A DNA stretch of 64,000 nt from Octopus sinensis (Eukaryota), in assembly GCF_006345805.1 (NCBI RefSeq), contig NC_043000.1, positions 60,636,001 to 60,700,000 of the forward strand, read 5' to 3'. The notes under the pieces were generated by a model. That model was not told where the DNA came from. It saw only the letters and a list, made by a program, of their open reading frames with translations, and made no database searches. Positions within the stretch are counted from its first letter, which is position 1. Each line of letters starts with the position of its first letter. The translations under genes and the position numbers were made by a program. This document shows positions 33,311-49,394 of this stretch, piece by piece.

Positions 33311-33588
33311 ATGTGTGCAAATAAGTTATTTCTAATTTTCATGATAATGGATATATATGTGTATGCAAAATTAAATGATTTTAAGCATGCTCCAGATATT
33401 TCACGCAATCGAGCAAAGCTAAAACGTCAAGTAATGCCTAAGATTCAAAAAAGTATCGTGATGAAAATGCTTATGAAAAAAAAATACCCAGGTATATTTC
33501 ATACTAAGGAAGAAATTGAAAACAAGTTATCAAACGAATATGGTCAGCGTCAATACCAACCTAAAGGAAACAACTATTGTTGTCAAGT
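33311..33588 (+). CDS. Coding exon 1 of a secreted Spaetzle/neurotrophin-like cystine-knot protein (173 aa total)
   Basis: Acceptor TTCTTTTCAG|ATG; MCANKLFLIFMIMDIYVYA (signal-peptide-like), KLKR dibasic site, ends NNYCCQ(V); donor GT|GTAAGT, phase 2. Confidence 0.82.
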
Positions 33589-33621
33589 GTAAGTACTAGA
33601 ATGATTTTCATTTTGGTTTTA

Positions 33622-34416
33622 TTTGACCGGCAGATTTTTAAAATAATTTCTTTGTAACTGAAAAATTTTAAACTTCGTATACTGGTAGAATGTGTTTATA
33701 AAACATCTTTTTCTCTTGGCTTTCTTGAGAAACTTCTGTAGTTTGTAAGTTATTTGTTGTTTATTTTCTTGCATTTCGGCAATTTCAACCAATCAATGAC
33801 GTCTATTGAGGTGAAAACAATTTCTACCATAAACATTTTCTGGCGGTGTCATATGAAAATGTCCCTGTTATTTATGAGAAAAAAAGATACCCTGTGACCA
33901 TAAAATGAGGGGTCACTCGTAAACAGAGCTGGATAACAAAACCGTTCCCTCTTTAGTGTCCACCCATAATTATGACCCTAGTATCGATCTATTGCATTTC
34001 AATCTGTTTTAGGGTTAGGGTTAGAGTTGAGAGGAAAATTAAAACTGCATATATTGTGAACTTAGAATATGTGTTTATTAATAAAAGTTTAATAATGATA
34101 ATCTTTTATTCATACGAATGTAACTGATATGAAATATGTCGTAAATAACAGGGGCATTTTCATATGACACCGCCAGAAAATGTTGTTGACACACTACGGC
34201 AGAAATCGTTTTCACCCCAATAAACGTCATTGATTGGTTGAAATTGCCGAAATGCAAGAAAATAAACAACAAATATCTTACAAACTACAGAATTTTCTCA
34301 AGAAAGCCAAGAGAAAAAGATGCTTTATAAACACATTCTACCAGTATACGAAGTTTAAAATTTTTTAGTTACAAAGAAATTATTTTAAAAATCTGCCGGT
34401 CAAAGCGAAAAGATCC
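33622..34416. mobile_element. Fold-back element with ~255-bp inverted arms, related to the GGATCTTTTC (Merlin-like) family
   Basis: 33622-33877 pairs with 34139-34404; right end GAAAAGATCC; shares GAAACTTCGTATACTGGTAGAATGTGT with about 9710-9735; TTAGGGTTAGGG in the centre. Confidence 0.85.
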
Positions 34417-35369
34417 CCGCCGGAGGATACTATCATCATCATCATTAACCGTCACTATCACCATTATCATCATCATCATCTACCATCACTATCACCATCA
34501 TCATCATAGTAGTTCTTTTTCCCACTCTTAGTTGTGACATTATTCTATGCTTTGTCAAATGAAATTTTCTTTGGTGTACATGCTGAAAAGGATTAGAATT
34601 ACTTAAGGAAGACCTGATTCTGATATTCAAGGATAGAAAAAAAAATTGTTTTTATAGAATTTATATTATTTCTTGCACATGCTCGCTATATTTTCTCATT
34701 CAAAATGGATACTAGACATAAATAAATATGATACAAGATAAAATTTTGCAAGGACAAGCAAGGGGAAAAAGACAAAACAAAAACAAAATACACTAGTAAA
34801 TGAATAAAAAATACAGAAAACTATGAATCTTTTAAGGAACACTTAAATAGAAAAAAAAAATGCAACCAGTGTAACAGATAATTTTGAAAATAGCCATAAC
34901 AGCAGTATTCCTATTGGGTCAGGCATTTTGAACAGCTTATATAGTGATTGTGTTAAAGCTCATCTTGCCTCATTTGTGACAGAATTTTTAGATCCAACAC
35001 AGTTCCTAGAAAGAAAAAGTTGTCTGGAGACTTTTATAAAACCAGACACTGTTGCGTTGCTGCAAGATCTAATCCTAGAAAGAACAAAGAAAATAAAATT
35101 ACATATCTGTTTTAGAAAGACTGATACAGATTAGAATTAGTTTTACAACAGCAACTACAAACATTCCTGGATATCTTATGAGGAATATTTTGCAAGTGAA
35201 AAGTAAAATGCCCACTACACCATTTACAAAGTAAATCTTAGAGCTTGATTTATTTCTATTTACTCAAAGTCATCATGGAACATGGCAAGTTGTTCAAAAC
35301 CGTTTTTCTTCCCAGAAATCTTTATTGAACATTGTTTATTCACTGTATATGTTCATTCATCATGTGTCG

Positions 35370-35612
35370 GAATAAAACCTTGAACATGAAGCTATTCACA
35401 CAGGGTGAGTGCTCAGCTGGCAAAAATGAGTTGTACCTGCATTTCAAAGGGCCGGCCTTGTCACACTCTGTGTCACGCTGAATCTCCCCGAGAACTACGT
35501 TAGGGGTACACATGTCTGTGGATTGCTCAGCCACTTGCACGTCAATTTCATGAGCAGGCTGTTCCGTTGATCATATCAGCGGGGACCCTCGTCATCGTAA
35601 CTGATGGAGTGC
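35370..35612 (-). mobile_element. tRNA-SINE 3' body fragment (13364 family)
   Basis: CAGCTGGCAAAAATGAGTTGTAC..GAGAACTACGTTA..GACCCTCGTCATCGTAAC homologous to the family (orientation read from the family consensus is + for this block; boundaries approximate). Confidence 0.7.
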
Positions 35613-35794
35613 TCCTATATATATATTGTCTTTTATTGCACAGAGGTATTTCATGGTTACTGGATTAATGATTCAATCCAATTATTAAAGTGTTGACATT
35701 TTTATTACCGACTTTCCTAAAAGAAAAGTCAACTCTAAAACATTTAAAAGATTTGTGCTGGGGAACAACTTCCACAAAATCATCATGATCATGA

Positions 35795-36170
35795 TGATCA
35801 TCATCATCATTTAACATCGGTTTCCCATGCTGGCATGTGTTGGACGGTTTGACAGGGGACTGGCAAGCCAGGAGGTCACACCAGGCTCTAATCTGATTTG
35901 GTACTGTTTCTACAGCTGGATGCCCTTCCTAATGCCAACCACTCCGAGAGTGTAGTGGGTACTTTTTAATGTGCCACCAGCACAGGAGTCAGTCAGGTGG
36001 CACTGGCATTGGCCATGTTTGGATGATACTTTTTACATGCTACTGGCACAGAAGCCAGTCGGAGCAGGGGGTTGGGGGTTGGCTGGCATCGACCTCATTC
36101 GAATGGTGCTTTTTATGTACCACTAGCATGGAGAGCCAGTTAGGTGGCACTGGCAATGACCCATGTATGA
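35795..36170 (-). mobile_element. RTE LINE 3' tail copy
   Basis: CCACTACACTCTCGGAGTGGTTGGCATTAGGAAGGGCATCC..(GAT)n as in the full-length element. Further copies at 37105-37420 (-), 46985-47450 (+), 57480-57783 (+), 58730-59093 (+) and 63160-63460 (-). Confidence 0.88.
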
Positions 36171-36571
36171 ATGGTAGAAAATTCTGTCTGTCTGTCCATC
36201 CAGGACCCCCGTGTCTCAGTCTACATTTGCTCTACATAGTAAAATTATACCTTTTTGGAATCAGGATGATCCCAGGATTGAAAATCTGCCCTTCATTTGG
36301 TTCTTGAACATCTAACATTGGGATCAGGCTTCGATGAGGATTTGTTATATGCTAATAGTTGAAAATTCAAATTTTAAAAGAACTCCAAAAATTTGTGGAG
36401 AGTTTTCATTTAAACTGAATTTAAAGTAATACATATTGGTAGGGTACCAATATAATTATTGCTCTCTTCAGTTTGGGCTGCAGGCCCAATTAGCCCCCCC
36501 CCCACAGGAGCTAGCTTAAAAGTCCACACGGAGTGTGACTTTTAAGCTAATATATATATATATATATATAT

Positions 36572-48025: not shown

Positions 48026-48139
48026 AACACCTACTTTCCAAATGCTAGATGTCCTGCAAAATTTAGATGGACTTGAAAGACCTATAATTCATTTTGAGGA
48101 TGCGTACCAAGTTATTCCTTGGGTTAGTTGTTCAAGCGA
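48026..48139 (+). CDS. Coding exon 2 of the cystine-knot protein
   Basis: TTTTTATTTTTGCTCTTAG| 114 nt (phase 2 to 2) |GTAAGT; TPTFQMLDVLQNLDGLERPIIHFEDAYQVIPWVSCSS(E). Confidence 0.88.
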
Positions 48140-48169
48140 GTAAGTAGACAGATCAAAGACATATCTCAT

Positions 48170-48655
48170 CCTTCTTCCATCTACCATCCTAACCATTTGT
48201 ATATTTCTTTCATGTAACTTTTCATTCTATTCTCTTTTCCTCTTTCTCTTTTTCCATCATCTTTTTTGTCATTTCTTTTGTCTTTTTCTTTATTATTGTT
48301 TTTGTAGTTTTCATGCTCTTTCTTTTGAGTCTTCCTTCTTTCTTCATATTCTTCCCCTTCTTCCTTCTCCTCCTCCACCTTCTCTCCTCTTTCTTCTCTT
48401 CTCTGCCTTCTTCTCCTCTCCTTCTCTCCTCTTCACCCTCTGTCCTCTTTCTTCTCCTCTCCTCCTCTCCCCCTCTCCTCTTTCTTCTCCTTTCTTTCTC
48501 TCCTCTTTCTTCTTTCTTTTTCTCCTCTTTCCTTCCTCACTCACCTTTCTCCTTCCATTTCTCACCCTCCCTCCTACTTTCCCCTCCTCCAGCTCTTCCA
48601 CCTCCTCCAGCTCTTCCACCCCCTCCTCCTTTTCCATTCTTCTTTTTTGTTTTGT
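48170..48655. repeat. Polypyrimidine (TCT/CTT/CCT) low-complexity tract in intron 2
   Basis: Direct reading; gives the spurious LLSS/EEKR ORFs. Confidence 0.93.
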
Positions 48656-49140
48656 TCCTGGATCTTGGAAATGAAATGAAGATGGAAAGTAAATAAAACG
48701 TTTTCGTAACTTAAGAGCTATGCTGAGTGGAAAAGGTGCATCCAAATGAGCAACAGAGGCATGAATATGATGCAGAACAATGTTTGACAGTATAATGATT
48801 ATGGGTTTGATGTGTTGATGCCAAGGTCAAGGAAATGACATCAGTTGATGCTCCAGCCCAAATGTGACAGCATTTTCTGTATAGTGGTGAATAAATGCTT
48901 AATGAATATTAAGAATGCAATCAGAGAAAAGATGGTCAGCTCAATAAAAAAATATTTTTTATCTGTTATATACTTTTTAATATTTGCTGTTAGAAAAAAT
49001 TTTAAGTTTGCAAATTTTGGCATTTATAGAATAAGTTCATGATGTGGTAATTATACTATTAGAGTAAGAAAATAACATTTGCTAATGAGTGTGGACATGA
49101 ATACCTAAAATTATTCTCATTGCACTTTGTTTTTGTTTAG

Positions 49141-49270
49141 GGGTCTTTGTCCTGAATGCAGATCAAGGAACAGAACAATTTCCTTGCTGGCCTGGGAAAA
49201 TGCAACCGAATTGACACCAACTTTTGACTTATTCTCTGTCCCTCTTTATTGCACATGTATTCCTGGCTAG
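49141..49270 (+). CDS. Coding exon 3 (terminal) of the cystine-knot protein
   Basis: CTTTGTTTTTGTTTAG|G then GLCPECRSRNRTISLLAWENATELTPTFDLFSVPLYCTCIPG-TAG; the phase fits exon 2. Confidence 0.88.
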
Positions 49271-49388
49271 ACTGTGTTAAAGCAATCCAAACATTTCAAG
49301 CATTATCATTTAAATACTTTACATCTTTCTTGAAAGTAGTACATTGTATACATTTCATTATATTGATTGCGTTGTACTCATTCATTAT

Positions 49389-49394
49389 AATAAA
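49389..49394 (+). terminator. Candidate polyadenylation signal of the cystine-knot gene
   Basis: AATAAA about 120 nt after the stop codon, in AT-rich unique sequence. Confidence 0.55.

Follow-up and report, generated by a model that had tools for sequence, protein, structure and literature searches.

An octopus member of a mollusc-wide family of predicted Spätzle-domain pro-proteins with two alternative 5' coding exons

Does the genome of Octopus sinensis encode a ligand of the Spätzle type and, if so, is its gene a new one? The question is raised by a stretch of 64,000 nucleotides (nt) of contig NC_043000.1 (RefSeq assembly GCF_006345805.1, positions 60,636,001 to 60,700,000 of the forward strand; hereafter the window, in whose coordinates positions are given below). 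Inspection of its letters alone, here called the original prediction, had placed a hidden three-exon gene for a secreted Spätzle/neurotrophin-like cystine-knot protein at 33311–49394. Endogenous Toll ligands outside arthropods are almost uncharacterised. According to a paper of 2020, the sole non-arthropod Spätzle homolog described by then was that of the clam Paphia undulata, whose role in signalling through Toll-like receptors (TLRs) was unproven (PMC7773633); in the reference made to it in PMC6915886, this homolog is described as the first in molluscs (Yu et al. 2015, Fish Shellfish Immunol 47:712, PMID 26477575). A literature search for Spätzle-like genes in Octopus and cephalopods found nothing specific. 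With a probability of roughly three in four, we propose that the gene to which the predicted exons belong, LOC115210415, represents in octopuses a family, spread across molluscs, of pro-proteins with a Spätzle domain (an NGF-like cystine knot), has two alternative 5' coding exons and acts as a secreted ligand.

The segments 33311–33588, 48026–48139 and 49141–49270 of the plus strand join in frame into 522 nt, the exact translation of which is 173 amino acids (aa) followed by one stop codon. Both introns, of 14,437 bp (33589–48025) and 1,001 bp (48140–49140), are in phase 2, open with the donor GTAAGT and close with an AG acceptor that is preceded by a pyrimidine tract (...gctcttag before A and ...tttgtttag before G, respectively). 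The first exon, called 1b here (278 nt, phase 0 to 2, aa 1–93), codes for the start methionine, a hydrophobic segment resembling a signal peptide (aa 1–19), a prodomain and the first two cysteines of the knot (CC, aa 90–91); at aa 59–73 (33485–33529) the prodomain carries YPGIFHTKEEIENKL, with the motif YPGLFxTxxE that is found family-wide in the alignment described below. Exon 2 (114 nt, aa 94–131 of the knot domain), which is common to both isoforms of the gene, contains the invariant LQNLDGLERPIIHFEDAYQVIPWV and Cys128, and the coding part of exon 3 (aa 132–173 and the TAG stop) supplies Cys134, Cys137, Cys168 and Cys170, the N-glycosylation sequons NRT and NAT, and the terminus FDLFSVPLYCTC. 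The 3' untranslated region extends from 49271 to an AATAAA at 49389–49394 that is conserved in O. sinensis, O. vulgaris and O. bimaculoides. At the other end, the ATG of exon 1b is directly preceded by ttctgtcttcttttcag and abutted by an acceptor-like pyrimidine tract with AG (taattctgtcttcttttcag, 33291–33310), and the 40 nt or so 5' of it show no differences among the three species. The tract suggests that exon 1b is spliced through this putative acceptor to some upstream exon. The exon model as originally drawn, including its splice sites, intron phases, single stop and AATAAA, is therefore retained, being reproduced by exact retranslation and by the octopus orthologs.

Over 59,270 nt compared, the window is 100% identical to O. 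sinensis chromosome CM016862.1 (GCA_006345805.1) from 60,636,001, and it is about 98–99% identical to O. vulgaris OX597817.1. The annotated RefSeq gene LOC115210415 (XP_029634877.1) has exons 2 and 3 as its final two coding exons, with an identical amino acid sequence, and exon 1b sits in an annotated intron of about 70 kb of the same gene, of which the window exons make up the 3' two-thirds. A homolog search with the 173-aa protein returned three proteins, namely isoforms X1 and X2 of O. bimaculoides and O. vulgaris CAI9721673.1, the last of which falls in one cluster with XP_029634877.1. Isoform X2 and this cluster have only the C-terminal 80 residues in common with the 173-aa protein, and the recorded protein models of O. 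sinensis and O. vulgaris lack exon 1b. The ortholog of this exon opens the coding sequence of isoform X1 of O. bimaculoides LOC106877899, and RefSeq models this form in that species under two successive accessions (XP_014782433.1 and XP_052823039.1). The three exons, their splice sites and the open frame recur in O. vulgaris (98% aa identity) and in O. bimaculoides (72% aa identity, 100% coverage), a recurrence that goes far beyond chance. Isoform X1 (UniProt A0A0L8GC44, "Spaetzle domain-containing protein") agrees with the window protein in its three coding exons, their phases and splice sites, its cysteine framework and its C-terminus; it differs in exon 1b, which has only 61% aa identity, two in-frame indels and KPKH for KLKR, and in two loops of the knot (aa 127–138 and 150–156). 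By these comparisons, exon 1b is an alternative 5' exon of a known, uncharacterised gene and not a separate new gene, and the 173-aa product is an X1-type isoform that is unannotated in O. sinensis and belongs to a gene already in RefSeq and UniProt. What was hidden, then, is the exon at 33311–33588, which the O. sinensis annotation lacks; exons 2 and 3 were already part of LOC115210415.

The annotated models of O. sinensis and O. vulgaris begin differently. A 9-nt mini-exon with the ATG (ATGTTGAAA, followed by gtaagt) leads to an exon called 2a here, and this in turn to 48026–48139 and 49141–49270, so that XP_029634877.1 and CAI9721673.1 come from the same gene as the window protein and end in the same two coding exons, whereas the mini-exon and exon 2a (MLK joined to INICIL...KRERRSLHLDEEFCCP) replace 1b. 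A tblastn search of the window found neither the alternative first exon beginning MLKIN... nor paralogous knot exons; exon 2a was not found there because its place is outside the window, about 22.7 kb upstream of the first window position; for the mini-exon this distance is about 27.8 kb. The order mini-exon, 2a, 1b and two common exons is also that of O. bimaculoides, for which RefSeq carries both the 1b and the 2a form. Exons 2a (254 nt) and 1b (278 nt) are both entered in phase 0 and left in phase 2, and each codes for a hydrophobic leader, a prodomain with YP(G/N)(I/L)F(H/Y)T and the CC that opens the knot; their similarity to each other is weak (tblastn E 0.001). On this sequence evidence the two exons are shown to be homologous, each joining the same two 3' exons. 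Used together (532 nt) they would shift the frame, and the mini-exon joined to exon 1b reads MLK-MCANK... in frame. The pair may be either mutually exclusive exons or alternative first exons.

The two prodomains also differ at the residues that precede the knot. Exon 2a has a conserved RERR/RGRR nine residues ahead of CC, while the 1b form has only a single Arg, 8–10 residues ahead; across the mollusc family alignment, basic residues at that distance before CC are frequent, not universal. The original prediction had assigned convertase cleavage to KLKR at aa 36–39. We rejected this site, which is KPKH in O. bimaculoides, and hence not conserved, and is placed some 50 residues N-terminal to the knot domain, well away from the boundary of the latter.

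To what family does the gene belong? An exhaustive profile search, built on five octopus sequences and run against 1.8 billion proteins with a cut-off of E ≤ 1e-3, returned 31 proteins (E 4.8e-14 to 7e-4), about 25 of which are 150–300 aa long; a second, word-indexed homolog search with the family alignment returned six proteins and added little. Members whose source was looked up are proteins of bivalves (Pecten, Ruditapes, Mercenaria, Crassostrea, Pinctada and Potamilus) and gastropods (Patella, Elysia, Aplysia and Lymnaea), and several of them carry the UniProt name Spaetzle-domain protein. In the family alignment of 29 sequences CC, Gln121, Cys128 and Cys137 are invariant and Asn105, Pro124, Leu147, Phe159, Phe162, Cys168 and Cys170 nearly so, and Cys134 is missing in three members. 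The window protein has the full family signature (the YPGLFxTxxE prodomain motif, CC, N..G, YQ.IP...C, G.C..C, LL and FD.F..P.YC.C), and with a profile made from the 25 members outside the octopuses its score is 106 bits (E 3.5e-34, four sequences searched). PF16077 (Spaetzle), the curated gathering score of which is 27 bits, is matched by 19 of the 29 members, two of them above that score (36.3 and 31.6 bits, model positions 2–95 of 96); Pfam NGF (PF00243) and IL17 (PF06083) are matched by none of the 29, nor by the window protein. When the family profile was run against PDB sequences, the only meaningful matches were the Drosophila Spätzle C-106 chains 4bv4 and 3e07 (E 0.0075–0.009), with Cys128, Cys137, Cys168 and Cys170 aligned to Spätzle cysteines, and no neurotrophin chain appeared in this search. 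On sequence evidence, the family is thus to be grouped with Spätzle, not NGF. The Spätzle motif pattern of the original prediction, and the profile comparison with PF16077 and NGF that it proposed, accordingly stand through the relatives and their C-106 matches and not by any Pfam match of the window protein taken alone; it is through relatives only that its membership in PF16077 is supported.

The likeness to Drosophila Spätzle C-106 (PDB 3E07, 4BV4, 4LXR/4LXS; PF16077) comprises a predicted layout of signal peptide, prodomain and C-terminal NGF-like knot of about 85–105 aa, and the YQ.I motif, the L-L/A position and F..P..C.C, which align in the family profile. The knot domain of the window protein has seven cysteines (aa 90, 91, 128, 134, 137, 168 and 170), a putative counterpart of the seven of Spätzle, which make three disulfides of the knot and one between molecules; four of them align to Spätzle cysteines. 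Both octopus isoforms place an Arg 8–10 residues before the first Cys, an arrangement seen at the Spätzle cleavage site as well. Unlike Spätzle, the octopus protein has a much shorter loop between Cys128 and Cys137 and an unrelated prodomain. The Paphia undulata homolog may belong to the same clade; other venerid clams, Ruditapes and Mercenaria, are among the members found here. The closest non-octopus relative (P0005, E 4.8e-14) comes from a Logan contig of SRR21372860 (919 nt, one uninterrupted open reading frame, ORF) and has a YPNLF motif and a VRNRT...YCTC ending as in octopus exons 2a and 3. If its species is a cephalopod, the 2a-type prodomain would be the older cephalopod form.

The predicted structure leads to the same superfamily. 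AlphaFold2 run on the five octopus sequences alone gave an unusable model, with a predicted local distance difference test score (pLDDT) of 40.7, and the prediction was confident only with the 29-sequence alignment (pLDDT 87.7, predicted template modelling score 0.67). In this model three helices at the N-terminus are followed by an all-beta domain, with long beta hairpins, at aa 92–171, and pLDDT reaches about 95 at aa 51–70 of the prodomain. In a Foldseek search of the PDB, neurotrophins took ranks 1–15 and 17–20 and horseshoe-crab coagulogen (1aoc) rank 16, with probabilities of 0.97–1.0; across these top 20, E runs from 2.5e-3 to 9e-2 and the template modelling (TM) score normalised to the target from 0.40 to 0.69. 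IL-17A came at rank 41 (E 1.9, probability 0.35). The vertebrate neurotrophins (NGF, BDNF, NT-3 and NT-4) and coagulogen are the best structural matches of the model and would have the same cystine-knot cytokine fold, while lacking sequence-profile similarity and differing in cysteine count and prodomain. An NGF-like cystine-knot cytokine fold of the C-terminal domain is thus supported by the model. The structural check asked for at the outset therefore gave a predicted fold of the cystine-knot type, and the claim of a pro-protein ending in a Spätzle/neurotrophin-like knot agrees with the model and with the family matches to PF16077.

How the gene evolves was examined by comparing O. sinensis with O. 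bimaculoides. Non-coding DNA flanking the window exons is 92–93.5% identical between the two; the ratio of nonsynonymous to synonymous divergence (dN/dS), which does not apply there, is 1.39 in exon 2a (93.3% nucleotide identity), likewise 1.39 in exons 2 and 3 (91%), and 0.93 in exon 1b, where identity falls to 80.9% and two 3-nt indels are found. Exon 2a changes at the flanking rate and no faster. Exon 1b has diverged 2.6 times as much as the flanking non-coding DNA (Fisher p = 4.5e-9 for the excess over pooled non-coding), and its synonymous divergence of 0.24 is about three times that of introns. The changes fall in two patches, nt 91–180 and 211–270 of the exon, leaving the leader and the YPGIFHTKEEIENKL segment almost unchanged; in nt 181–210, 1 nt differs from O. 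bimaculoides. Despite 53 substitutions and two 3-nt indels the frame is open; when 53 substitutions were placed at random in simulation, it survived in only 6.2% of runs. The 12 octopus differences within the knot domain lie preferentially at alignment positions that are variable in the mollusc family as a whole (one-sided p = 0.004); amino acid changes in exons 2 and 3 showed no significant clustering by a run-length test (p = 0.12). We read these patterns as those of a gene that is functional, its core being under constraint and its loops and prodomain evolving fast. The faster-than-flank change of exon 1b could reflect diversifying selection or multi-nucleotide replacement events.

From these elements a course of action can be sketched for the product. 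It would be secreted, its N-terminus MCANKLFLIFMIMDIYVYA, followed by K, having a hydrophobic core, and the prodomain, predicted to be largely helical, would be removed or displaced by a cleavage few residues before CC. The 2a form may be cut at the conserved RERR/RGRR by a furin-type protease; with no more than one Arg before CC, the 1b form may need a different protease. The seven-Cys knot domain would then dimerise and act as an extracellular ligand, most likely of a Toll-type receptor, with a role in immunity and/or in neural or developmental signalling. In such a scheme the choice of exon would set the activation route of one and the same ligand. A bolder version, possible but doubtful in our estimation, holds that the two paralogous prodomain exons are mutually exclusive and give one ligand two routes of activation, a constitutive one of the furin type (2a, RxRR) and one through another, perhaps infection-triggered, protease (1b), with the 1b prodomain under diversifying selection because it diverges at 2.6 times the flanking rate with its frame kept. 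If that were true, the 1b pattern would be consistent with an arms race against proteases or inhibitors of pathogens, and the locus would offer a lophotrochozoan counterpart to the protease-cascade control of Spätzle in insects.

Several observations weigh against LOC115210415 being a secreted ligand of the Spätzle family. Direct searches with the 173-aa protein gave no Pfam match even at E ≤ 10 and no PDB sequence match, and the octopus orthologs score 14.8–17.2 bits on PF16077, against the gathering score of 27. The Foldseek E-values are modest, 2.5e-3 at best, and the first 50 matches include no solved Spätzle structure. The cysteine doublet is N-terminal in the octopus knot domain and C-terminal in Drosophila Spätzle, at the opposite end of the domain, and an intermolecular disulfide is therefore only putative. 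Mean dN/dS is about 1 in every exon, which, taken alone, resembles relaxed constraint. Finally, a collection of 15 billion proteins contains none that is identical, or at least 90% identical, to the 173-aa form, and we infer secretion, cleavage, dimerisation and receptor binding alike.

Some of these points have been weighed as signs of something else. The absence of the 173-aa form from that collection, transcript-assembly proteins included, together with its absence from the protein models of O. sinensis and O. vulgaris, would be expected if exon 1b were a decaying duplicate, unused in these two species, so that only the 2a form were made and the 173-aa protein did not exist there; the dN/dS of 0.93, the lack of a conserved multibasic site and the change between KLKR and KPKH point the same way. 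We regard this as unlikely. Three species keep the frame open, although the exon has diverged by 19%; the two indels are both multiples of three, and the simulated survival of an open frame is as low as given above. Conservation extends to the GTAAGT donor and the acceptor-like tract, both of them intact, the part coding for the signal peptide and the YPGIFHTKEEIENKL motif are nearly unchanged, and RefSeq twice modelled the 1b form in O. bimaculoides. Decay alone, moreover, cannot give a divergence 2.6 times the flanking non-coding rate.

The nature of the ligand, too, can be read in other ways. The leading structural matches, NGF, BDNF, NT-3 and NT-4 (E 2.5e-3 to 9e-2, TM normalised to the target 0.47–0.69), and the missing Spätzle structures in the Foldseek top 50 are what a true neurotrophin of the NGF family would produce, one acting through Trk/p75-type receptors and not as a Toll ligand. 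At the sequence level, however, PF00243 is matched by 0 of 29 family members and Spaetzle by 19, and among PDB sequences the family profile finds Spätzle C-106 and no neurotrophin chain. Spätzle C-106 has seven cysteines and neurotrophins have six; the octopus domain has seven. Since Spätzle and NGF belong to the same superfamily, a likeness of fold is expected in any case, and we consider a true neurotrophin quite improbable. Least credible of all is a non-signalling cystine-knot protein, such as a cleavage-activated clotting or structural protein akin to coagulogen, or else a cytokine of the IL-17 type. Coagulogen 1aoc does reach a Foldseek probability of 1.0, yet it ranks behind neurotrophins and leaves no sequence-level signal; octopus genomes contain many IL-17-like genes, yet IL-17A is a weak match (E 1.9) and no family member matches Pfam IL17. 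Both were rejected on these grounds, and a Spätzle-domain pro-protein remains the reading that we prefer.

If LOC115210415 is indeed such a pro-protein, the main interest of the locus probably lies in the two-prodomain architecture and the accelerated exon 1b, the gene not being itself a discovery. From the locus, the gene model of O. sinensis and O. vulgaris can be corrected by a second 5' coding exon, and a testable hypothesis of two prodomains for one ligand follows. The family is now defined across bivalves, gastropods and octopuses, and its fold is predicted with confidence, whereas the function of this mollusc-wide family has hardly been tested. Cephalopods have TLRs, in the smallest repertoire among molluscs (PMC10279657), and because these are few, the pairing of ligand and receptor should be tractable. 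The search for orthologs that had been suggested found the 1b form in the two other octopuses named above, at the identities already given.

The remainder of the window is rich in repeats. Intron 1 is packed with transposon remnants, including a Tc1/mariner-type transposase remnant at 46208–47010 that matches HTH_Tnp_Tc3_2 and DDE_3 in two overlapping frames. A CT-rich low-complexity tract in intron 2 (48313–48745) gives a long spurious ORF, as do TG/CA-rich repeats at 342–986 and 44569–45673 (CMYVCMYV, HTHTYTH); at these three places the ORF list should not be taken as evidence of genes. A reverse-transcriptase ORF (11207–12913) is followed closely downstream by three tandem copies of a unit of about 2.16–2.17 kb, which are about 99% identical to one another and occupy 12940–19787; Tandem Repeats Finder, with a longest period of 500, missed this repeat. 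By megablast, the segments 13691–15082, 15853–17241 and 18022–19413 all map to one O. vulgaris segment, which suggests that the unit is single-copy in that species. Three further segments (9651–11015, 25741–27194 and 40864–42379) have no megablast match of at least 800 nt at the collinear O. vulgaris position and are probably insertion/deletion differences between these two very close species. Just downstream of the gene, at 51932–57175, an insertion of about 5.2 kb is absent from the orthologous O. vulgaris locus. It includes an uninterrupted minus-strand ORF of 1,050 aa (52534–55686) with matches to an endonuclease domain (Exo_endo_phos), to reverse transcriptase and, weakly, to PHD, and by its sequence it looks like a young, possibly active retrotransposon of the type without long terminal repeats (non-LTR).

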